Positions 2,570-26,968 of a stretch of 64,000 nucleotides of DNA are shown in pieces. How positions within the stretch are numbered: position 1 is the stretch's first letter; each line of letters begins with the position of its first letter. The position numbers were made by a program, and so were the translations under genes. The stretch lies in sequence record PP695294.1; one strand, given 5' to 3'. The notes under the pieces are model-generated. The model was not told where the DNA came from and did no database searches. It saw only the letters and a list, made by a program, of their open reading frames with translations.

Positions 2570-2818
2570 ATGCAAAAAACAATCATCGGAATAACGGTTG
2601 GTTCTTTCTGTGGCTTCCCTACCCCACAAACAGAACCCCAATATTTGGGCGCAGGCAAACCTGATCCGGAAGTCCGTAAGTTGCGCGAAGAAGCAAAAGC
2701 CAGAGTTCTTACTGAGCTGGAATCGTTGCTTCAGTCTCCGGTTATTTCACAATGGGGTATGGCAATAGATGTCACTAGAACTGATCGACGAGGCTATTAT
2801 CTCCCACGACCTGTTTAA
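2570..2818 (+). CDS. Hypothetical protein, 82 aa
   Basis: ATG directly after the previous stop; overlaps the macrodomain gene by 50 nt. Confidence 0.5.
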   Translation: MQKTIIGITVGSFCGFPTPQTEPQYLGAGKPDPEVRKLREEAKARVLTELESLLQSPVISQWGMAIDVTRTDRRGYYLPRPV

Positions 2819-3269
2819 CGCGCCTGAGCGCTTCAAGGTCGTTACAGTTAACTGTGTTGGTGCAATGGGAAGGGGCATTGCTTTGGCGTGCCGAGAACGC
2901 TTCCCATCGCTTTATAATGACTATCGCCAGAAATGTCGTAAAGAGCAAATCGTTATCGGTGAGGTCTATTGTTATCCTGAGGAAGGGGTAATACTCCTTC
3001 CTACTAAAACCCATTTTCGCTATAAATCGCAGATTTACTATGTCACGTCCGGCATTGATGCGCTGGCGCGACTAGGGGAAGACTTAGAAGGAGGGATTGC
3101 GATACCGCCCCTAGGGATGGCTAACGGTTGGTTACGTTACCATGAGCGATTGGAAATCTTTATACACTTACAGAAACGACTACAACACACGGAGCAGACT
3201 TATCGATTCTATTTACCGGACACACTGCTAAAGGAAGCAGAGAAAATCATCCCAAATAGTTTCAAATAG
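2769..3269 (+). CDS. DarG-like macrodomain (ADP-ribose glycohydrolase)
   Basis: DLF..., VTVNCVGAMGRGIALACRERFP, LLPTKTHFR, IAIPPLGMANGWL match DarG-type macrodomain motifs. Confidence 0.85.
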   Translation: MSLELIDEAIISHDLFNAPERFKVVTVNCVGAMGRGIALACRERFPSLYNDYRQKCRKEQIVIGEVYCYPEEGVILLPTKTHFRYKSQIYYVTSGIDALARLGEDLEGGIAIPPLGMANGWLRYHERLEIFIHLQKRLQHTEQTYRFYLPDTLLKEAEKIIPNSFK

Positions 3270-3368: not shown

Positions 3369-4091
3369 ATGTTTCGCACCATTTTATTTCTTCTGGTAGC
3401 AATGACTACGTTCAACAGCAACGCTTCTTACCAGACCACCAGTAACAAACACCAAAAAGAATTCGTCCTTATCCAGGACCAGTTCAATGAGATTAAACCT
3501 CTCATCGTCACCGCATCTCGAAAACAAGGCGTACATGCCGGGATGCTTGCGACCACCATTTACCGTGAATCCCGTTTTAATAAAAACGTGGGTAAGAATA
3601 AATCGAGCAGTGCTAGTAGTGTTGTCCAAATGACGACAGGCACTAAACGCTCCATGATACGTCTGTATGGGAAACAACTTAACATCCCAAAGAACGCAGA
3701 CCTTAATAAACCGAAGTATGCTGTACAGCTTGCTGCCGTTTACATGAAACACATCGAGGATCATCTGACAAAACAACTCAAACGCAAGCCGAGCACAGCC
3801 GAAATCGCTTTAGGCTACCGCTTCGGTGAGGGTGCTGCTGTTGCGATGATTAAAAAGAAATCACCGGTCGGGAAACGCTGGATGGCCAGCTACCGAAAAG
3901 ACGCAGCATTCTACGGTGCGAAAATGACACCACCGAAAGCTGAAACACGTCAGCTTGCTTTTGCGAAGGAAGACCACGACCAACGCGTCGCCGAACTTCA
4001 GAAAATCTGGGATACGCTGTACACCAAAATATCACCTGCGGCCGGTACATTACTGGCAAATAACACTATCATGAAAGGAGCATTGCTTTGA
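3369..4091 (+). CDS. SLT-type lytic transglycosylase with N-terminal signal peptide
   Basis: MFRTILFLLVAMTTFNSNA signal-like start; IYRESRF (catalytic Glu), ASSVVQM in place of AxGLMQ, DLNKPKYAVQLAAVYM, LGYRFGEG. Confidence 0.8.
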   Translation: MFRTILFLLVAMTTFNSNASYQTTSNKHQKEFVLIQDQFNEIKPLIVTASRKQGVHAGMLATTIYRESRFNKNVGKNKSSSASSVVQMTTGTKRSMIRLYGKQLNIPKNADLNKPKYAVQLAAVYMKHIEDHLTKQLKRKPSTAEIALGYRFGEGAAVAMIKKKSPVGKRWMASYRKDAAFYGAKMTPPKAETRQLAFAKEDHDQRVAELQKIWDTLYTKISPAAGTLLANNTIMKGALL

Positions 4092-4999: not shown

Positions 5000-5059
5000 T
5001 TTTTTACAGCAGTAACTAATCATCTGAAAATACCATTGACTTTTATAAGGACTATTAAC

Positions 5060-6193
5060 ATGCAATTTCCAATTTCCGTAATCGAAGATATGGCTCGTGT
5101 AGTACGTGACCGTGCGTATGTGCTTAGCTACGAGGGTATTCGTGCATATTCAGAAGCTCTGATTGCACAACACGTCACTGGCACCGGTGTTATCAACCCG
5201 GATCTTTACAATGCGCTGGTCGATAACAATGTGGAGGCTTATCTGCCGCTGCCGCACCTGCGTAATAAGTTGTGCCTTTCTTCTCAAACTCTTCAGTTTG
5301 ATAACCTGCCGCCACTGAAATATTCGCCAGATGACCGTTGGGGAAGTATGCTGGGTGTAGCTTTCCAAAATTGCCACGCGCCTTATAACTGGTCTATTCT
5401 CGTTGAAGGTGTTGATGGTGTCTGGTATGCCATTGCACATTCTGACGGATTCTTCTTCGAACCAGGTGAGTTGATTAAACCAGTAAGTGCCCCACAGGGC
5501 CGTGCTAAGGTTGGGCATTGTTACATTGAATTGACTCATGTCCAGTGGACTATCGAAGACTGGCGTGCTGCCTCCGTTATCTTCGGTGACGGTAAACCAC
5601 ACTCAGTTACTTTCGAGCGTTGTGAAGCAGAGCATGTTGAAGAGACTGACAATGACGAAGTGGGAGATCGTTACGCGCCGCTGGAAGAGTGTCGTAACAT
5701 CGCGAACATCGACTGGGTGAAAGTCTTTACGGCCAACCCCGGTTTCCGTGGTCAGACTATCAACCCCGGCGAAGTAACCTGGGAAGGTTTCGTACAACTC
5801 GCAGATAAACTCGGTTATGACGTGTGGGATTATACCTACAAACGTCCATACCCGAATGCATCGGAAGATGAAGACCACGATGAAATCATTCTGGAAAACT
5901 TGGTTGATATCGAAAATGTGTTTATTGACGACGAAATCTTTGTTACCCTCGGTATCGAACGTCCAAAATCAACAACTTATCCGGTATCGGTTTCCAGTGT
6001 GATTCAGGAACTGGGCAAAATGCAGGAGCAAACCGTCGAAGTGAAAGTCGACGAAGAGCAAATGCATATCGTTACACAGGTACAGAAAACTCTGAACCTG
6101 GATAAGCTGTACGCGGAAATCCGCAAGCAGCCGAAAAAGAAACGTACTGCTGCCACAATCAAAGCAATGATGCGTGAAATTATCGGCAAGTAA
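5060..6193 (+). CDS. Hypothetical protein, ~377 aa
   Basis: Long ORF; ATG5060 with TAAGGA upstream (the track uses TTG5036). Confidence 0.8.
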   Translation: MQFPISVIEDMARVVRDRAYVLSYEGIRAYSEALIAQHVTGTGVINPDLYNALVDNNVEAYLPLPHLRNKLCLSSQTLQFDNLPPLKYSPDDRWGSMLGVAFQNCHAPYNWSILVEGVDGVWYAIAHSDGFFFEPGELIKPVSAPQGRAKVGHCYIELTHVQWTIEDWRAASVIFGDGKPHSVTFERCEAEHVEETDNDEVGDRYAPLEECRNIANIDWVKVFTANPGFRGQTINPGEVTWEGFVQLADKLGYDVWDYTYKRPYPNASEDEDHDEIILENLVDIENVFIDDEIFVTLGIERPKSTTYPVSVSSVIQELGKMQEQTVEVKVDEEQMHIVTQVQKTLNLDKLYAEIRKQPKKKRTAATIKAMMREIIGK

Positions 6194-20533: not shown

Positions 20534-21412
20534 ATGGATGATGAGAAAAAGCCGCCGCTGAATAGCACACGCGAGCAAATTTGGCACGGTACGCCACCGG
20601 CGTCAGATTCCAGCTACCCGTTAAGGAAAGCTTATTGGAATCTGGTTAAGTTGATGGGTATTAGCGACGGGATATGGAAAGACCTTATCCGTCAACATGT
20701 CAACGACCCGGAGTATCTGAAACAGTTTCGTGACAGCAAACTGACCACGATGACCGACCGCGTTAACCGGCTGAACACCTCACTTACGGGTGGTTCGGTA
20801 CGTAACCTGACAGTCGATTTTACGTGGAAACGTTTCATCGAGGGATTAGTTATCCTGGAGATGCAAACGCTAACAGTCACCCTGCTGACTAAGCGGGGAA
20901 GCTTTGACACGAAGTGTTTTGTATTCGACAGTACGTTTGTGCGTGAGGACTTCATTAAGAACTTACGTAATGAGAACAGGAAGAAACGTAAAGAGCGTTT
21001 CGAGCATCCCGCATCTTACGACGTTAACGAGTATGTCGCGAACATCGACCACACTATCGAACATGTGATGAAGCACATTCTCCTGCGTTTAATCTACAAA
21101 GTTATTCGTGGGTATAAAATCGATGGTGATAAACTGGAACGGTGGACGACGAACTACGTCAACAACCCTAAGTTGTGCCCAGGCACATCATCCAAACGTG
21201 GGGACAGACGAAACAACATGAAACAGGCGATGCGTCACACCGAGGCAATCACCTGGCGTTGGTTTCTAATAATCTTACAAGCGCTGGACGTACGTGAGTT
21301 CGAAATCACTTTCAAAGTTCGTCATCGTAGTGGTAGAGAATATGAGGTCAGCGACGACGTTCCGTTAGCGACGTATAGATTCTGGAGTTCCAATGAAACT
21401 GAACAACCTTGA
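20534..21412 (+). CDS. Hypothetical protein with internal tandem duplication, 292 aa
   Basis: Two ~95-aa units sharing VN(D/N)P...DR.N.(L/M)...TW(K/R).F...L..L. Confidence 0.75.
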   Translation: MDDEKKPPLNSTREQIWHGTPPASDSSYPLRKAYWNLVKLMGISDGIWKDLIRQHVNDPEYLKQFRDSKLTTMTDRVNRLNTSLTGGSVRNLTVDFTWKRFIEGLVILEMQTLTVTLLTKRGSFDTKCFVFDSTFVREDFIKNLRNENRKKRKERFEHPASYDVNEYVANIDHTIEHVMKHILLRLIYKVIRGYKIDGDKLERWTTNYVNNPKLCPGTSSKRGDRRNNMKQAMRHTEAITWRWFLIILQALDVREFEITFKVRHRSGREYEVSDDVPLATYRFWSSNETEQP

Positions 21413-22667
21413 TGGGATTACCAACCAGATAAGCAGCACAACGGGCGCAATAGAGAACAAAGTTAACGATGTTCAAAACCGTGTCCAGTCAACAATTGGT
21501 AATGCCGAGCGCGGTATTGAAAGTGCTCAAAATTTGTACAATAACGTAACCGCCAAAGCAGGGGAAACTTTCGACAAGATCTCCAACATTGGCAACACGA
21601 TAAGTGAAAAATTTGGTAACGTGTTCGGGGGTGGCGACCAAGTCACGGTAGGTGGTAAAAAGGCAGCAGGTTCAGCGGCTTCCGGAGTATCGCCGCCTCA
21701 ACGTGTGCCTACTTTTGCTTCCAACACGAAAGAAGCGCTGCCAGTTATCGATCCACAGAAACGCGATGTGTCCGAACCCTTTCAGAAGGTAAACCAGGAA
21801 GGGAAAACTGCACTGAGCTATCTCTCACCGGGCGGTGCAGGTAGTCTGTTAAGTAAGGGATGGGATACACTGACTGATCTTCGCGATAGCGCTTTAAGCG
21901 CGGTCGGGACAGATTATGCGTCAGTGAAAGCTCGCCTGGAGTCCACGATGAACATCGCGGGACAGCTTGCCAAACTGCCTGGTGAGGTACAGCGTGAAAT
22001 CGGTAACTACGTCGATATGGCCAATAGCGCCAAGTGGCAAGTCACCGCACTGATTGACGATGTTACGCACACGTTTGATAGCTTTAAGGACCTGGACGAC
22101 TTCTTGTCTATCGACGGGATCATTGATAGCTTTACGGGCGGGAGTGGGAATTTCTCCTCGCTGGATATCAACACCTCGTCTGCGTTGATATACGGTATGT
22201 CCACAAAGCTCAATCAATACGGTCTGCCGAATCGCATCGATCCGATGATTCAGGCTATCACCGATCCTATTGCACAACAAGCGTTGTACGGCGAACTGAT
22301 GATACAGGCTGCGGCTGCTGGCAATCTCAATTCTGTTGAGTATTACTTGCCTAAACTACAGCCAGGTCAAGGTGCTGAGATTGCAGATACTGTTATTCAG
22401 AATCTTCTGATGAACCTTAACGTTGAGCCGGGGGTGGGTTACAGCACCTACGGTCAGCGACTGTTGACGTTGTTTAATGCGCTTAATCCAAACTGGGATA
22501 TCTCTAAAACGAATCCTGGAATGGTTGAGCTTAAGCTTTACACGTACGCCAACAGTAATGCGATTCAAGCACTCCTGACCACCGAGAAACGTCCGTACGT
22601 TATCGCCGGTGGTAGTGTCCAATATCAGTCTGCCAGTACGCTGGTGCAGAGCTATTTCGCCTTGTAA
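21393..22667 (+). CDS. Probable virion structural protein, 424 aa
   Basis: N-terminal amphipathic N/Q/S/T-rich repeats; call from recalled synteny. Confidence 0.55.
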   Translation: MKLNNLDGITNQISSTTGAIENKVNDVQNRVQSTIGNAERGIESAQNLYNNVTAKAGETFDKISNIGNTISEKFGNVFGGGDQVTVGGKKAAGSAASGVSPPQRVPTFASNTKEALPVIDPQKRDVSEPFQKVNQEGKTALSYLSPGGAGSLLSKGWDTLTDLRDSALSAVGTDYASVKARLESTMNIAGQLAKLPGEVQREIGNYVDMANSAKWQVTALIDDVTHTFDSFKDLDDFLSIDGIIDSFTGGSGNFSSLDINTSSALIYGMSTKLNQYGLPNRIDPMIQAITDPIAQQALYGELMIQAAAAGNLNSVEYYLPKLQPGQGAEIADTVIQNLLMNLNVEPGVGYSTYGQRLLTLFNALNPNWDISKTNPGMVELKLYTYANSNAIQALLTTEKRPYVIAGGSVQYQSASTLVQSYFAL

Positions 22668-22676
22668 GGTACCTCT

Positions 22677-23528
22677 ATGTCGAAAGATGAAGGTAAGTTT
22701 TTGCGTAGTGCGTTGGAACGTCTACGTGTCGATGGTGCATCGGTGGATGCTTTGGCGGCTGCTTTTGGGTTTACGTTGCCCGCCTCGGTAGAAGCCACAT
22801 ATCCTGTTTTACGTCCCATCCTACCACCAGAAGAAAAGGAAGCCTTTGTACGCTATTTACTGCGTATGGGTTACCAGAGTACCTTGGTGGATATCACGCC
22901 GTCTACAGACGGTCTGAATCACTTCAACATCTATTCGCAGGGGCGAACTGAGATAGGTCGGATGGCGAGTAACTTCTATGCTCGCCCTGGTGAGTATTTT
23001 GTTACCCCCCACGGACCTTTCCGGACGCTCGAAGGTTATTATCATTACCTGCGTATTCTGGATTACTTAATGCGTGAAATTGATAACCGCACTTCGGTGA
23101 TGGAATTTGATATCATGCGACAGGCAGTGAACACCTGGCCTGATATTGAGAAGTTGCGTGCACTAGATGGCAGCGACTGTATCCGGCTAGGTCGTAATCT
23201 GAAAGCGGAAATCTACGGAGGAACCAGTTATAAGCCCGGTTCATTTACCCCGGTTACAGAAAGCCGCTTTATCCATGCGCTGGTAAATAAACTCTTTATA
23301 CTGTCGGTCGACGGGACATCGTTAGGTAATGTATTTGCAGAGATTCTGCGAGCACGTATCCCGCTTAAGCATTATTACATGATGCAAGGGCGTAAGATAT
23401 TCCCAGCACACTGGGACTGGCTACCAAATCTGATTGAGATGATAGCTGAACATATCGATCCTGAGGACAGTACGTTTGATCGAACCGAACTTTTGAAGAA
23501 ACTAGGAATCGATGATGGGACTATTTGA
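22677..23528 (+). CDS. NADAR-like protein (T4 gp30.3-like) with N-terminal extension
   Basis: DGLNHFNIYSQGRTEIGRMASNFY...HGPFRTLEGYYHYL, later LKHY; SNF...F...E motif of NADAR. Confidence 0.65.
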   Translation: MSKDEGKFLRSALERLRVDGASVDALAAAFGFTLPASVEATYPVLRPILPPEEKEAFVRYLLRMGYQSTLVDITPSTDGLNHFNIYSQGRTEIGRMASNFYARPGEYFVTPHGPFRTLEGYYHYLRILDYLMREIDNRTSVMEFDIMRQAVNTWPDIEKLRALDGSDCIRLGRNLKAEIYGGTSYKPGSFTPVTESRFIHALVNKLFILSVDGTSLGNVFAEILRARIPLKHYYMMQGRKIFPAHWDWLPNLIEMIAEHIDPEDSTFDRTELLKKLGIDDGTI

Positions 23529-24174
23529 TATTCTCAAAAACTTAGACGAGCAGCAGGAAAAAGAAGTCATTACTGTTGCGCGTGAGTCCATCTCTACGGA
23601 GAAGGAACGTGAGTATTGCATGTGGGTTAAACCCACTGAAGAAGGTTGGCAATGGCTGTTTGGTCAGACAGGTGAAACGTTCCTGGATGTCATCATGCCG
23701 GTCGTTAACGGCAAACGTCGTGTGCGGTTGTCCACCGATAAAACCGCAGTCTTAACGTTAAAACGACAAGCATCTGATGGTCGTATCGAAGAGAACTCGG
23801 ATATCGGGTTTGCCTCGGGTCTGACCTTCTACGAAGATGGCAATCTTGCACATCTCGTGCGTCGTATCAAACTCGAGCCAGGCGAGCTGGCAGAGCAAGG
23901 TGCGAAGCATTGGGATATCGACTTGTTCTTTAAACTGGCAGGTCACCCAGTTATCGAATCGCAGGCAGGTTTCGAAGACCTTGTCAACGAACTGCGCGAC
24001 TCCACTACATTCGGCGAGTGGGTAAAAGTCGAACTGGAAGTTGAGCGATTTGAGCTGACGTCTATTAAGGACGTATTGCCGTTTGCAGTAGAAGACGCTA
24101 TTCCAGGCAATCCTTCTAACCCCGATGACCAAGAAGTCATTCGGGACTACTGGGATAATGAAACCCGCATCTAA
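23512..24174 (+). CDS. CYTH / triphosphate tunnel metalloenzyme, probable head protein
   Basis: EKEREY (ExE), RRVRL, LTLKR, IEEN, WDIDLF, VELEV; ARE-S site before the domain. Confidence 0.75.
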   Translation: MMGLFDILKNLDEQQEKEVITVARESISTEKEREYCMWVKPTEEGWQWLFGQTGETFLDVIMPVVNGKRRVRLSTDKTAVLTLKRQASDGRIEENSDIGFASGLTFYEDGNLAHLVRRIKLEPGELAEQGAKHWDIDLFFKLAGHPVIESQAGFEDLVNELRDSTTFGEWVKVELEVERFELTSIKDVLPFAVEDAIPGNPSNPDDQEVIRDYWDNETRI

Positions 24175-24178
24175 GTCG

Positions 24179-24215
24179 TACCCTCTCCTTCGGGGGAGGG
24201 TATCTTCATTTTTTA
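24179..24215 (+). terminator. Intrinsic terminator
   Basis: TACCCTCTCC-TTCG-GGGGAGGGTA plus T-rich tail. Confidence 0.75.
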
Positions 24216-24232
24216 TCTTAAGGAGTATGTAA

Positions 24233-24595
24233 ATGCAAATCGGTTTTTTCTTTAATCGTCACGGAATCGTGTTTGTTTGTGGGGTTGCGGATAGCGACGG
24301 GAGACGTGTACGCACGTTAGAACTCGACGAAACATCTATGGTCGAGTGGAAAGAGAAACTTGCTCCCTTCGCAGAAGGTAAGTTTCAACTATTGCAACTC
24401 TACACGCAAGCTGCGTCGCCACGCGTGGCTTTCTCCCGACTTGGAGACGGCGAAGACACCACACACCTGGTTATCTTCAGTGGGCAGCCTGGTCGTGTAT
24501 TGAGCGAATTATTGATGGGATTCAACCCGCCTAGCAAGCCCAGGATGAATACGTACAATGTGCACGACAGTAGTCAAATTCTTATTCTTCGATAA
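24233..24595 (+). CDS. Hypothetical protein, 120 aa
   Basis: AAGGAG RBS. Confidence 0.8.
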   Translation: MQIGFFFNRHGIVFVCGVADSDGRRVRTLELDETSMVEWKEKLAPFAEGKFQLLQLYTQAASPRVAFSRLGDGEDTTHLVIFSGQPGRVLSELLMGFNPPSKPRMNTYNVHDSSQILILR

Positions 24596-24643
24596 TTTAC
24601 GGCCACGGCTGTACGTATGTAAAAGACCTCAAGGAGAACTATA

Positions 24644-25066
24644 ATGAACAATATCGCGTTTGAAAAAGGCGTTGGCTTACTTCTGAACAACACCATCATC
24701 GCTGGCACTAATAACGCTAACTGGGAAGCGTTAGCACAGCGTCTCAAAGACAAGCCTGTGAAGATTGTGGTAACGAGCGAGCTGCCGTTAAACGGCACGA
24801 TGGCAGACTGTGGTCCAATGTTTGCAGCGTTTAATGTCGACTATGATTGCGGCTCCGCTTTCTTACAAAACGCCGCGTTACGTAGCCGTCTGTACAGCTG
24901 GCGTTTGTTGGGTCCGGTAAGTAAAGCCGCTGGCCAGATGGTTAACCAGGGCACACCGATGTCGGGTGTGGAAGACCAGACTATCGCCGTTGTCGTTTCT
25001 CGCGCAACCAGCCAGCTTAACTTTGCAATCTGCTACGCGTATCGGGAGGAAGAAGTCTGTGCCTAG
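24644..25066 (+). CDS. Hypothetical protein, 140 aa
   Basis: AAGGAG RBS. Confidence 0.8.
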   Translation: MNNIAFEKGVGLLLNNTIIAGTNNANWEALAQRLKDKPVKIVVTSELPLNGTMADCGPMFAAFNVDYDCGSAFLQNAALRSRLYSWRLLGPVSKAAGQMVNQGTPMSGVEDQTIAVVVSRATSQLNFAICYAYREEEVCA

Positions 25067-25928
25067 CATCATTCAGCAAGTTCAGGCAGTCGAAGAGTGG
25101 TTTCGCAAGACAGATATTTACCAACAGAAAGCGACTGAACGTCAGTTGGTGAAGTATTACGTCACACTCGGCAGGATCTCAGCAGGTGTCGATGAACTGG
25201 ATAACCTAAAGGTGGCTGCCGGTATCGGCGAATCGATTTGGACATTTGCCGCGCTGCTACACCTCGGTCCACATTCTAACTTCGGCGATATTATCGTTCC
25301 GCTGAGTGACGCGCTATCCGTTCGTACTACAACTGGAACGAAAGAAGGGCAGCTGCAGCAACTCATGTTAATTGCGGTCGAGACCGTTAGTGTTGTTTTG
25401 CGTGAACCAGAACCTGACGCTAAGAGTTATAGCGCGCTGCTTCGTAAGTTGATGAGACAGTATCAATTGTTGGCGTGTCGTTGCGGGCTGGAGTTTGACC
25501 GTGTTGTTTTTAATGGCCATCGTAAGCTCGTTAAGACTCCCGAAACATTAAGCACGCTCGGCGAACTGCTTAAAGCAACGTTGCCGTTACCCGACAACGA
25601 TTTGGCGAAACAAACCTATCAGGCGGTGTACAAAACCAACGAGTCAGTTCACGACATTATTGTAAATTGCCTTTTGGCCACATCGAATGATTTACAAACC
25701 AAATATAACGGCGACGTCGCCATGCCGCAGCTATTGCTGCGGATGGAGGACATTATGAACGAAAAGCTGCAAGAGCTTCTCAAGGCGCACTTTGAACCGT
25801 GGATAGTAAGAAAACAAATGTTGTTCAATCGTAACCCTCGCGTTGATGTTAAGTTCGATGGTAACGCTGTAAACATTTGTGCGAACGACGATTTAAGAGA
25901 CATTTTGAATTTATTGAAAGGAAAATAA
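25059..25928 (+). CDS. Inactive MazG-like paralog (pseudoenzyme), 289 aa
   Basis: GTG25059 with GGGAGG; aligns by eye with 29290 but the acidic metal ligands are substituted. Confidence 0.6.
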
Positions 25929-25930
25929 TT

Positions 25931-26968
25931 GTGAAACAATATCTTGAGATGATGCAGAACATTCTGGACGAGGGTCATGTTAAAGGCGATCGTACTGGAA
26001 CAGGGACGCTTTCTGTCTTTGGACGCCAGATGCGTTTTGATTTGCGTAAAGGTTTCCCGTTAATCACGACTAAGAAACTCCACCTGCGTTCTATTATCCA
26101 TGAACTGCTGTGGTTCCTTAGTGGTGATACCAACACCAAATATCTGGAAGATAACGGCGTTACCATTTGGCGGGAGTGGCAAGATGAGAATGGGAACCTT
26201 GGACCCCTGTATGGTGCACAATGGAGACGTTGGAAAGATGTGAAACTGGTGCCTAAGAAAAATGCAGCTTTACTCGAGAAACTGCAAGATGCTGGATACG
26301 CGGATTATGGCGACGCGGACGATGGTTCACAAATGTTCGATGCGCGTGTACTTCTGAAAGAACACGACCAGATCTCTAAGGTGGTTGACCAACTGCGCAA
26401 CGATCCTGACAGTCGTCGTATTATTGTCAGCGCATGGAACGTGGGTGAGTTGGATCAAATGGCGTTAGCTCCATGTCATGCGTTCTTTCAGTTCTACACT
26501 CGTGAGCTGTCTATCGACGAGCGTCTTGATTGGTTTGAAAAGAACCTTCCAGATCAATTTAACGATTCCCGCTTTAGTAATGAAGCTGTAGCAGATGACG
26601 CAGTGTTCCACGTTGAGATGGACGCACTTGAAATACCTCGCCGTGTTCTTTCATGTCAACTGTACGCACGTTCCCAAGACTTCTTCCTGGGAACACCGTT
26701 TAACATCGCGTCTTACGCATTACTCGTGCACATGGTAGCACAGCAAGTTAACATGTTGCCGGGCGATTTCGTTTGGAGTGGTGGCGATGTGCATTTATAC
26801 TCCAACCATCTGGAGCAGGCCAAGCTGCAGCTGACTCGTGAACCCTTACCTTTGCCGAAACTGGTCATCAAGCGTAAACCGGAATCTATCTTCGATTATA
26901 AGTTCGAAGATTTTGAGATCCGGGATTATGTATCACACGACCCAATTAAAGCACCAGTCGCTATCTAA
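25931..26968 (+). CDS. thyA: Thymidylate synthase
   Basis: [67 protein letters not shown]; GTG start at 25931. Confidence 0.97.

Follow-up and report, generated by a model that had tools for sequence, protein, structure and literature searches.

The 64,000-nucleotide stretch of sequence record PP695294.1 analysed here (the window) carries, at positions 22677-23528, a gene whose product we call gp224 after its orthologue in phage SPN3US. We propose, at a probability of roughly 55%, that gp224 is a divergent NADAR of the His type, an ADP-ribosyl N-glycohydrolase that would probably remove guanine-linked ADP-ribose (ADPr) of the DarT1 type and serve counter-defence as an orphan antitoxin. The phage probably carries in it a second eraser against DNA-ADP-ribosylating defences, beside a macrodomain protein. 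By its sequence the window belongs to the genome of an SPN3US-like jumbo myovirus, its bases 21000-25000 having 100 % identity with Salmonella phage 1252 (PP695294) and 97.4 % with SPN3US. The gene comprises the following elements:

22677-23528, + strand: coding sequence of the gp224 orthologue, 283 amino acids, ATG start, stop included (SPN3US_0224 / YP_009153518; member of PHROG 652)
22666-22669, + strand: AAGG, a Shine-Dalgarno-like element 7 nucleotides before the ATG, read from the sequence
22677-22892, + strand: N-terminal extension, residues 1-72, from the model and the alignment
22893-23471, + strand: predicted NADAR-fold catalytic domain, about residues 73-265, from profile comparisons and structural matches
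22908-22937, + strand: first-strand motif D78-G-L-N-H82-F-N84-I-Y86-S87, from the alignment
22968-22976, + strand: NADAR 'SNF' motif S98-N99-F100, aligned to S18-N19-F20 of AdfN and S30-N31-F32 of YbiA
23031-23054, + strand: core-helix segment E119-G-Y-Y-H123-Y-L-R126, from the alignment
23190-23195, + strand: G172-R173, aligned with G78-R79 of the Phytophthora nicotianae NADAR
23370-23378, + strand: H232-Y233-Y234 in 'PLKHYY', aligned with H123 of T4 AdfN ('VLKHSI')

Homology of gp224 to the NADAR superfamily

The open reading frame (ORF) lies on the + strand exactly where the original prediction had placed it and encodes 283 amino acids, and the strings quoted there were all found: GRMASNFY at residues 94-101, TPHGPFRTLEGYYHYL at 110-125 and LKHY at 230-233. 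The AAGG element shares bases with the TAA stop codon of the preceding gene (22665-22667). PHROG 652, a family of unknown function, matched gp224 at E 1.4e-90. An exhaustive phmmer search returned 548 cluster representatives at E<=1e-3 and tblastn returned 478 phage records; the family includes at least these records and also hundreds of metagenomic clusters. Because of these numbers, and because E119 and H232 are kept in 50/50 aligned sequences down to ~25 % identity, the comparative evidence marks gp224 as a real conserved gene and no chance ORF. Its orthologues are labelled 'hypothetical protein' in the records examined, and the family as a whole, which curated models miss, is 'hypothetical' in nearly all of them.

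Profile comparisons were performed with hhalign, using family alignments built around T4 gene 30.3 (adfN) and E. coli ybiA. The gp224 family matched the AdfN profile at 91 % probability (E 9.4e-7, 149 columns) and the YbiA profile at 68 % (E 4.7e-5, 145 columns). With a second set, composed of short-form members, the matches were 97.2 % (E 3.7e-11) to AdfN and 95.6 % (E 1.3e-8) to YbiA, beside 97.8 % (E 9.5e-13) for the control comparison of AdfN with YbiA. The best PDB sequence match of the family profile was 8BAU (E 0.0099), and a PDB sequence search with the single gp224 protein gave no match.

The AlphaFold2 model, calculated from a 50-sequence alignment, had a mean predicted local distance difference test score (pLDDT) of 93.1 and a predicted template-modelling score (pTM) of 0.91. 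As described for YbiA, the predicted gp224 structure is of the alpha+beta type, in which two small beta sheets flank a helical core. When the model was compared with 48,161 representative PDB chains by an aligner independent of Foldseek, the top three were the three solved NADARs, with a clear gap to the rest. A shape search of the ESM Atlas returned clusters of the own family first and then Phage_30_3 clusters (template-modelling score by hit 0.70 and 0.56), as well as a cluster that is 99 % PF08719 NADAR (0.61, 155 residues) and DUF6939/NADAR-DarT1 clusters; among the structural searches, the fold was recovered only by this search and by the Foldseek-independent aligner. A language-model feature search likewise ranked GP30.3, NADAR, 'N-glycosidase' and NADAR-DarT1 clusters highest. 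The original prediction had called gp224 NADAR-like and named structure prediction and profile comparison as the check; both were run, the predicted fold is that of a NADAR, the AdfN and YbiA profiles were matched, and the functional residues fall in register. We therefore regard membership of gp224 in the NADAR superfamily as established computationally, with high confidence.

Active site, proposed substrate and the companion macrodomain

Across the 50-sequence alignment (homologues 25-66 % identical), N84, Y86, G94, F100, E119, G172 and H232 were invariant, and D78, G79, H82, S87, S98, N99, G113, F115, Y122, H123, L160, G165, K205, Y233 and Y234 were conserved in at least 90 % of the sequences. 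D78, G79 and H82, the last of them kept in 49/50, lie before the first strand and are specific to the family. A further, mostly different set of 50 members, which has 23 sequences in common with the first, showed the equivalents of G79, H82, N84, G94, E119 and H232 to be invariant.

These residues coincide with the functional positions of known NADARs. 'NIYS' (84-87) aligned with 'NFYS' (18-21) of YbiA and 'EIRS' of AdfN; E119 with E36 of AdfN, E48 of YbiA and E43 of 8BAU; R126 with K43, K55 and K50 of the same three proteins; G172-R173 (50/50 and 44/50) with G65-R66 of AdfN and G78-R79 of both YbiA and 8BAU; and K205 with K104 of YbiA. E36 and K43 are needed for AdfN function (PMC11257639), and the ADP-ribose contacts in 8BAU are made by E43, K50, G78, R79 and E125, R79 contacting the pyrophosphate (PMC11543638). 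The core-helix Glu followed seven residues later by a basic residue, as in E43/K50 of 8BAU, E88/K95 of the E. coli C7 NADAR and E36/K43 of AdfN, is present in gp224 as E119/R126. At position 126, set against CHARACTERISED NADARs, Arg occurs in 21/21 long forms, which carry the N-terminal extension, and Lys in 20/29 short forms, Arg or Lys being found in 45/50.

The catalytic residue of the last strand is Glu in YbiA, Asp in BC4488/DarG1-type NADARs and His in phage gp30.3-type NADARs (PMC11543638, PMC11125620). In gp224 this strand offers the polar residue H232 (50/50), which aligned with H123 of AdfN; the YbiA alignment is out of register in this segment, and the equivalence of H232 to E125 of YbiA is drawn from the AdfN alignment and from published work. 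The original prediction had recognised an SNF...E motif and had failed to find the C-terminal acidic pair. The SNF and the catalytic Glu (E119) could be mapped; a last-strand Glu or Asp could not, and the AdfN alignment and the literature therefore suggest that the missing acidic residue is replaced by the His of 'LKHY'. Because the set of Glu, His and Gly-Arg is invariant, gp224 is likely active as an ADP-ribosyl glycohydrolase.

T4 gp30.3 (AdfN, PF08010), the best profile-profile match, is likewise encoded by a phage without an adjacent toxin gene; around gp224, Pfam and PHROG searches of the gp221-gp228 orthologues found no DarT1 or ADP-ribosyltransferase domain. The two proteins have in common the NADAR fold, the SNF, an L-E-G core with E36/K43 versus E119/R126, the G-R pair and a last-strand His in an 'LKH' context (H123 versus H232). 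gp224 differs from AdfN in having no PF08010 match and a separate clade with a long stem, in Arg for Lys and His for the invariant Gln40, and in the additional D78, G79, H82, Y122, Y233 and Y234, all nearly or fully invariant. It also has an extra insert of ~30 residues, placed after the catalytic helix, and the ~70-residue N-terminal extension. Among the AdfN family invariants Q40, T134, L136, T137, E140 and F141, Q40 corresponds to H123, and the C-terminal T-x-L-T-x2-E-F is not reproduced in gp224. Moreover, gp224 is encoded in a structural block of a nucleus-forming jumbo phage, whereas the AdfN gene lies in an early region, close to the DNA ligase gene and alt.

The other solved or characterised NADARs differ from gp224 in the last strand. 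YbiA (PF08719; PDB 2B3W), a housekeeping N-glycosidase of riboflavin intermediates, has Glu125 and a D-x-x-W-G-D-G motif, whereas the phage-encoded gp224 has His and lacks the motif. The DarG1 NADARs (PF22397; PDB 8BAT; E. coli C7 NADAR) have Asp at this position. The eukaryotic P. nicotianae NADAR (PDB 8BAU, an ADP-ribose complex) has Glu125 instead of His and ~16 % identity with gp224, in which its adenine-stacking Tyr and Trp contacts are only partly kept.

In the mechanism that we propose, R126 and R173 would bind the ADP-ribose moiety, the distal ribose would be placed between E119 and H232, and the bond between ribose and base would be cleaved on ADP-ribosylated phage DNA. Guanine-ADPr from DarT1-type toxins would be the most likely substrate, with gp224 acting as an orphan antitoxin. 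We consider this the best-supported specific guess because the phage NADARs tested so far all act on guanine-ADPr DNA (PMC11257639, PMC11125620), because DarTG1 has been reported in Salmonella enterica (PMC11543638), and because a DarT2-specific partner is encoded in the same genome. An anti-DarT1 role of gp224 is, by this analogy, plausible.

The partner is the macrodomain that the original prediction had noted at 2769, which we identified as an orthologue of AdfM, a proven anti-DarT2 enzyme:

2769-3269, + strand: AdfM orthologue, a macrodomain protein of 166 amino acids, from a Pfam Macro score of 21.7 bits and homology to Asesino gp217

Its Pfam Macro score is just below the cut-off of 22, and its full-length identity with gp217 of Erwinia phage Asesino is 69.9 %. 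Asesino gp217 is AdfM, which was shown to be located in the phage nucleus and to free DNA of the ADP-ribose added by DarT2 (PMC13309987). N28 in 'VNCVG' and K80 in 'PTKTH', read from the sequence of the window protein, would be equivalent to the N/K active-site pair of that study. This ORF is 'hypothetical' in the records of phages 1252 and SPFM19 and has no feature in that of SEGD1. A search of all window ORFs found no further NADAR-like ORF. AdfM (PhiKZ gp104, Asesino gp217) belongs to the same genome and phage group as gp224 and follows the same proposed logic of an orphan antitoxin-like eraser. It has an unrelated macrodomain fold and acts on thymine-ADPr, and its activity and nuclear localisation have been shown (PMC13309987), whereas the role of gp224 is a predicted one. 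Together, gp224 and AdfM, encoded ~20 kb upstream and directed at the thymine-ADPr of DarT2, would give cover against both DarTG classes. SPN3US-like phages replicate inside a phage nucleus, and gp224 would need to reach the DNA there; a role of the N-terminal extension in nuclear localisation is speculation.

If this proposal is true, nucleus-forming jumbo phages would possess two enzymes against DarT toxins instead of one. The AdfM study of 2026 dealt with the macrodomain only and described the phage nucleus alone as an imperfect shield (PMC13309987). Since Asesino, which was used in that study, carries both genes (gp217 and gp246), the idea of two erasers is directly testable. A function would also be assigned to a large, widespread family, with many members among Ackermannviridae as well as among phages of enterobacteria and Vibrio. 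Furthermore, its natural variants (Lys/Arg, Gln to His, the extra invariant His) would open a route to NADAR substrate specificity, the basis of which the field has named as an open question (PMC11125620). Surveys from the Aravind lab (PMC7824862, PMC9503650) had already found NADAR domains in many large myoviruses, sometimes among morphogenesis genes, so the general idea is not new; what appears to be new here is the assignment of SPN3US gp224 / PHROG 652, the altered active site and the pairing with AdfM.

Results weighing against the proposal and alternative explanations

Three groups of results weigh against an anti-DarT1 enzyme. First, direct searches did not recover the homology. With the single protein, no Pfam family matched at E<=1 (PF08719 NADAR, PF08010 Phage_30_3 and PF22397 NADAR-DarT1 included) and no NCBIfam family at E<=10, and hidden Markov models built from the AdfN and YbiA families missed gp224 among all window ORFs at E<=10. 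Foldseek found nothing significant in the PDB; against AFDB Swiss-Prot it placed YbiA first at a non-significant E of 0.47, and against the AFDB clusters YbiA was top or near top, again without significance. The missing matches to curated models are a sensitivity limit of those models and do not contradict the profile-profile and structural results. An unrelated fold with a chance motif match would account for the failure of Pfam, NCBIfam and Foldseek on the PDB, but we hold it to be exceedingly improbable: the three solved NADARs stood well apart from the rest of the chains, the profile-profile E values of the short-form set came with the functional residues in register, and the language-model and shape searches agree independently.

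Second, the gene lies among genes for structural proteins:

20534-24174, + strand: four-gene block gp222-gp223-gp224-gp225, with overlaps of 20 and 17 nucleotides and a gap of 9 nucleotides
24178-24203, + strand: terminator-like hairpin of 11 pairs (6 G-C) followed by a T-rich tail, right after the gp225 stop, from a consensus scan

The hairpin is the probable 3' end of the gp222-gp225 unit. A structural-looking operon had been suggested from the sequence, and the flanking genes are indeed the gp223 and gp225 orthologues, both found in virions by mass spectrometry. In the virion spectral counts (Table S4 of PMC5105663), gp223 was present in full virions and missing from tailless particles, indicating that it is tail-associated, while gp225 is present in heads (PMC5105663) and cleaved by the prohead protease (PMC10052503). 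Packaging of gp224, for which virion proteomics had been proposed as a check, was not borne out: the published SPN3US table has no row for gp224 in any of the four preparations (PMC5105663). The block is kept in the Erwinia phages Asesino (gp244-247) and Kwan (gp250-253). Identity there is 69 % between gp223 and Asesino gp245, and 63 % (Asesino) and 53 % (Kwan) for gp225, as against 49 % and ~39 % for gp224, which is thus changing faster than the proteins encoded on either side. That gp224 shares a conserved block with genes for tail and head proteins suggests late co-expression, which is unusual for a counter-defence enzyme, and this position together with the lack of detection in virions forms the main tension in our proposal. 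Late synthesis, with action on DNA that is being replicated or packaged, is one way to reconcile the two; a copy number in the virion too low to be detected is another, and the four genes may also not share one late transcript. A literature search for infection time-course data gave nothing useful, and the RNA runs with the locus are wastewater metagenomes or metatranscriptomes containing it as contigs, which carry no infection timing.

The same position could mean that gp224 reverses or regulates an ADP-ribosylation, or another N-ribosyl modification, installed by the phage itself, and that it is a self-immunity or maturation factor tied to virion assembly. The place between the tail gene gp223 and the head gene gp225 is kept in three genera with overlapping frames. 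Moreover, T4-like phages encode NADARs alongside phage ADP-ribosyltransferases, according to one survey (PMC9503650), and T4 adfN lies ~3 kb from alt. However, no ADP-ribosyltransferase was found in the genes adjoining gp224 and gp224 is absent from the virion table, and we rate this explanation as improbable. To our knowledge, no phage-installed ADPr modification has been described for the SPN3US-like group, which also counts against it.

Third, the active site departs from those of characterised NADARs. Arg is fixed at position 126 in all long forms, and the K95R mutant of the E. coli C7 NADAR kept hydrolysis in vitro and lost the rescue of DarT1 toxicity (PMC11543638). In both the AdfN and the YbiA family the fourth residue after the catalytic Glu is always Gln, and gp224 has H123 there (His in 45/50); the P. 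nicotianae enzyme has Met at this position, so Gln is not universal. The contacts of the YbiA D-x-x-W-G-D-G (D130/W133-type) have no clear counterpart, although W248 is kept in 44/50. It could be argued that gp224 has kept the fold and lost catalysis, and that it binds, for example, a toxin or ADP-ribosylated DNA, or contributes to assembly or structure. Such a protein would agree with Lys to Arg and Gln to His at positions conserved in the characterised families, with the structural genomic context and with the existence of the non-enzymatic anti-DarT proteins AdfA and AdfB (PMC11257639). But the invariance of E119, H232, G172 and N84, with H82 in 49/50, among homologues as divergent as these is what one expects of an active site, Arg can stand in for Lys in vitro (PMC11543638), and gp224 is missing from the virion table, so that we find loss of catalysis very improbable. 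A purely structural role was rejected as the principal explanation on the same residue pattern and the same absence from virions.

Family forms, fusions and neighbouring genes

Most members of the gp224 family are stand-alone proteins of 140-190 amino acids. These short forms occur in Ackermannviridae (Kuttervirus and relatives) and in Vibrio, Klebsiella, Serratia, Dickeya and other phages; 'putative N-glycosidase' is one depositor's name for a short-form protein. The long form was found in 62 records, all from enterobacterial jumbo phages of the SPN3US, Asesino, Wellington and CR5 groups. Fewer than 20 residues precede the first conserved motif in 107/154 family members, and 70-150 do so in the jumbo-phage forms. 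For gp224 an extension of ~70 amino acids had been predicted, which agrees with a conserved domain beginning at about residue 73-77. All 21 long jumbo-phage forms have the extension and the stand-alone short forms lack it. It is helical in the AlphaFold2 model (H7-19, H23-29, H51-63) and acidic, with an isoelectric point of 5.3, whereas the DarG1 extension is a basic beta1-beta2-alpha1 element (PMC11543638). When searched alone, it gave no informative neighbours and no detectable relatives.

In a maximum-likelihood tree, the gp224 family formed one clade (Shimodaira-Hasegawa approximate likelihood-ratio test, SH-aLRT, 93) with a stem length of 2.18, separate from AdfN (96) and YbiA (99); YbiA is the only outgroup, and a sister relationship of AdfN and the gp224 family cannot be read from this tree. 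All 21 long forms fell into a single clade (SH-aLRT 99), and the N-terminal extension was therefore probably gained once. The family could be a distinct NADAR lineage with a His-rich active site (H82, H123 and H232 around E119) and Arg fixed in the jumbo branch. It might then have another specificity or chemistry, directed for example at another base-ADPr linkage or an undescribed defence system; if the extension also guides the protein into the nucleus of nucleus-forming phages, chimalliviruses would possess two erasers of DNA-ADPr targeted to that compartment. We regard this wider view as unlikely.

Other members of the family have the domain fused to a YAcAr-type SLOG domain, a UDG-superfamily glycosylase or a PD-(D/E)XK nuclease. 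The fusions were seen in four members and in BFVD A0A173GE06 (Erwinia phage RAY, 'DprA-like protein'), and the partner regions of six other members of 325-502 amino acids had no Pfam match. YAcAr-SLOG is already known to be combined with both NADAR and Macro domains (PMC9503650); the fusions to UDG and PD-(D/E)XK point to DNA. In Kuttervirus, the short-form gene adjoins those of rIIB, a histone-like protein and topoisomerase II.

An active NADAR might instead work on a soluble molecule derived from NAD+ or ADP-ribose, such as an immune signal, a toxic ADPr derivative or a by-product of RNA repair, rather than on DNA. Iyer et al. have proposed substrates of this kind for phage NADARs in general, and the fusions to YAcAr-type SLOG domains as well as the altered active site (H123 for Gln, the extra H82) are compatible with it. 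The guanine-ADPr DNA activity of all phage NADARs tested, the DNA enzymes among the other fusion partners and the place of the short forms among genes of DNA metabolism argue for DNA, and a soluble substrate thus seems rather unlikely to us.

A PADLOC search gave a phospholipase match only, at chance level, which we discarded. The gp224 orthologues of Salmonella phages SPFM1, 5, 8, 9, 12, 15 and 20 include several proteins of odd length, with 9-13 short stretches at 90-100 % identity, which suggests many indel errors in the assemblies rather than decay of the gene.

Among the neighbouring genes, the gp223 orthologue (21393-22667, + strand, 424 amino acids) has a helical, repeat-like N-terminus with weak ApoLp-III and Baculo_PEP_C matches and a weak match to a tape-measure PHROG, and the structural protein PhiKZ ORF174 is listed as a homologue. 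In phage Kwan, the gp250-253 block is followed by gp254, a 'restriction endonuclease' (5018-5671 of the retrieved Kwan stretch), whose place is taken by small hypothetical genes in SPN3US-like phages; the site may be a variable, defence-related insertion spot. Directly after adfM, the ORF at 3369-4091 (+ strand, 240 amino acids) encodes a protein that has a hydrophobic N-terminus and matches the SLT lytic-transglycosylase domain (E 2.2e-6). The corresponding Asesino protein, gp218, carries the annotation 'putative endolysin', and the window protein looks like an endolysin of the signal or signal-arrest-release (SAR) type.

The gp228 orthologue (24966-25928, + strand) had a weak match to the MazG-like pyrophosphatase phrog_715 (E 0.0019, residues 36-110). 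SPN3US has a separate annotated MazG a few kb downstream, and the phage may thus possess a second, divergent MazG-like protein. Finally, the thymidylate synthase (25877-26968, + strand) has 344 matched residues (20-363) across a Pfam model of 266 positions, indicating an insertion of ~80-90 amino acids. Its mechanical ORF begins at a TTG upstream of the annotated starts, which give proteins of 338 amino acids in SPN3US and 345 in phage 1252.

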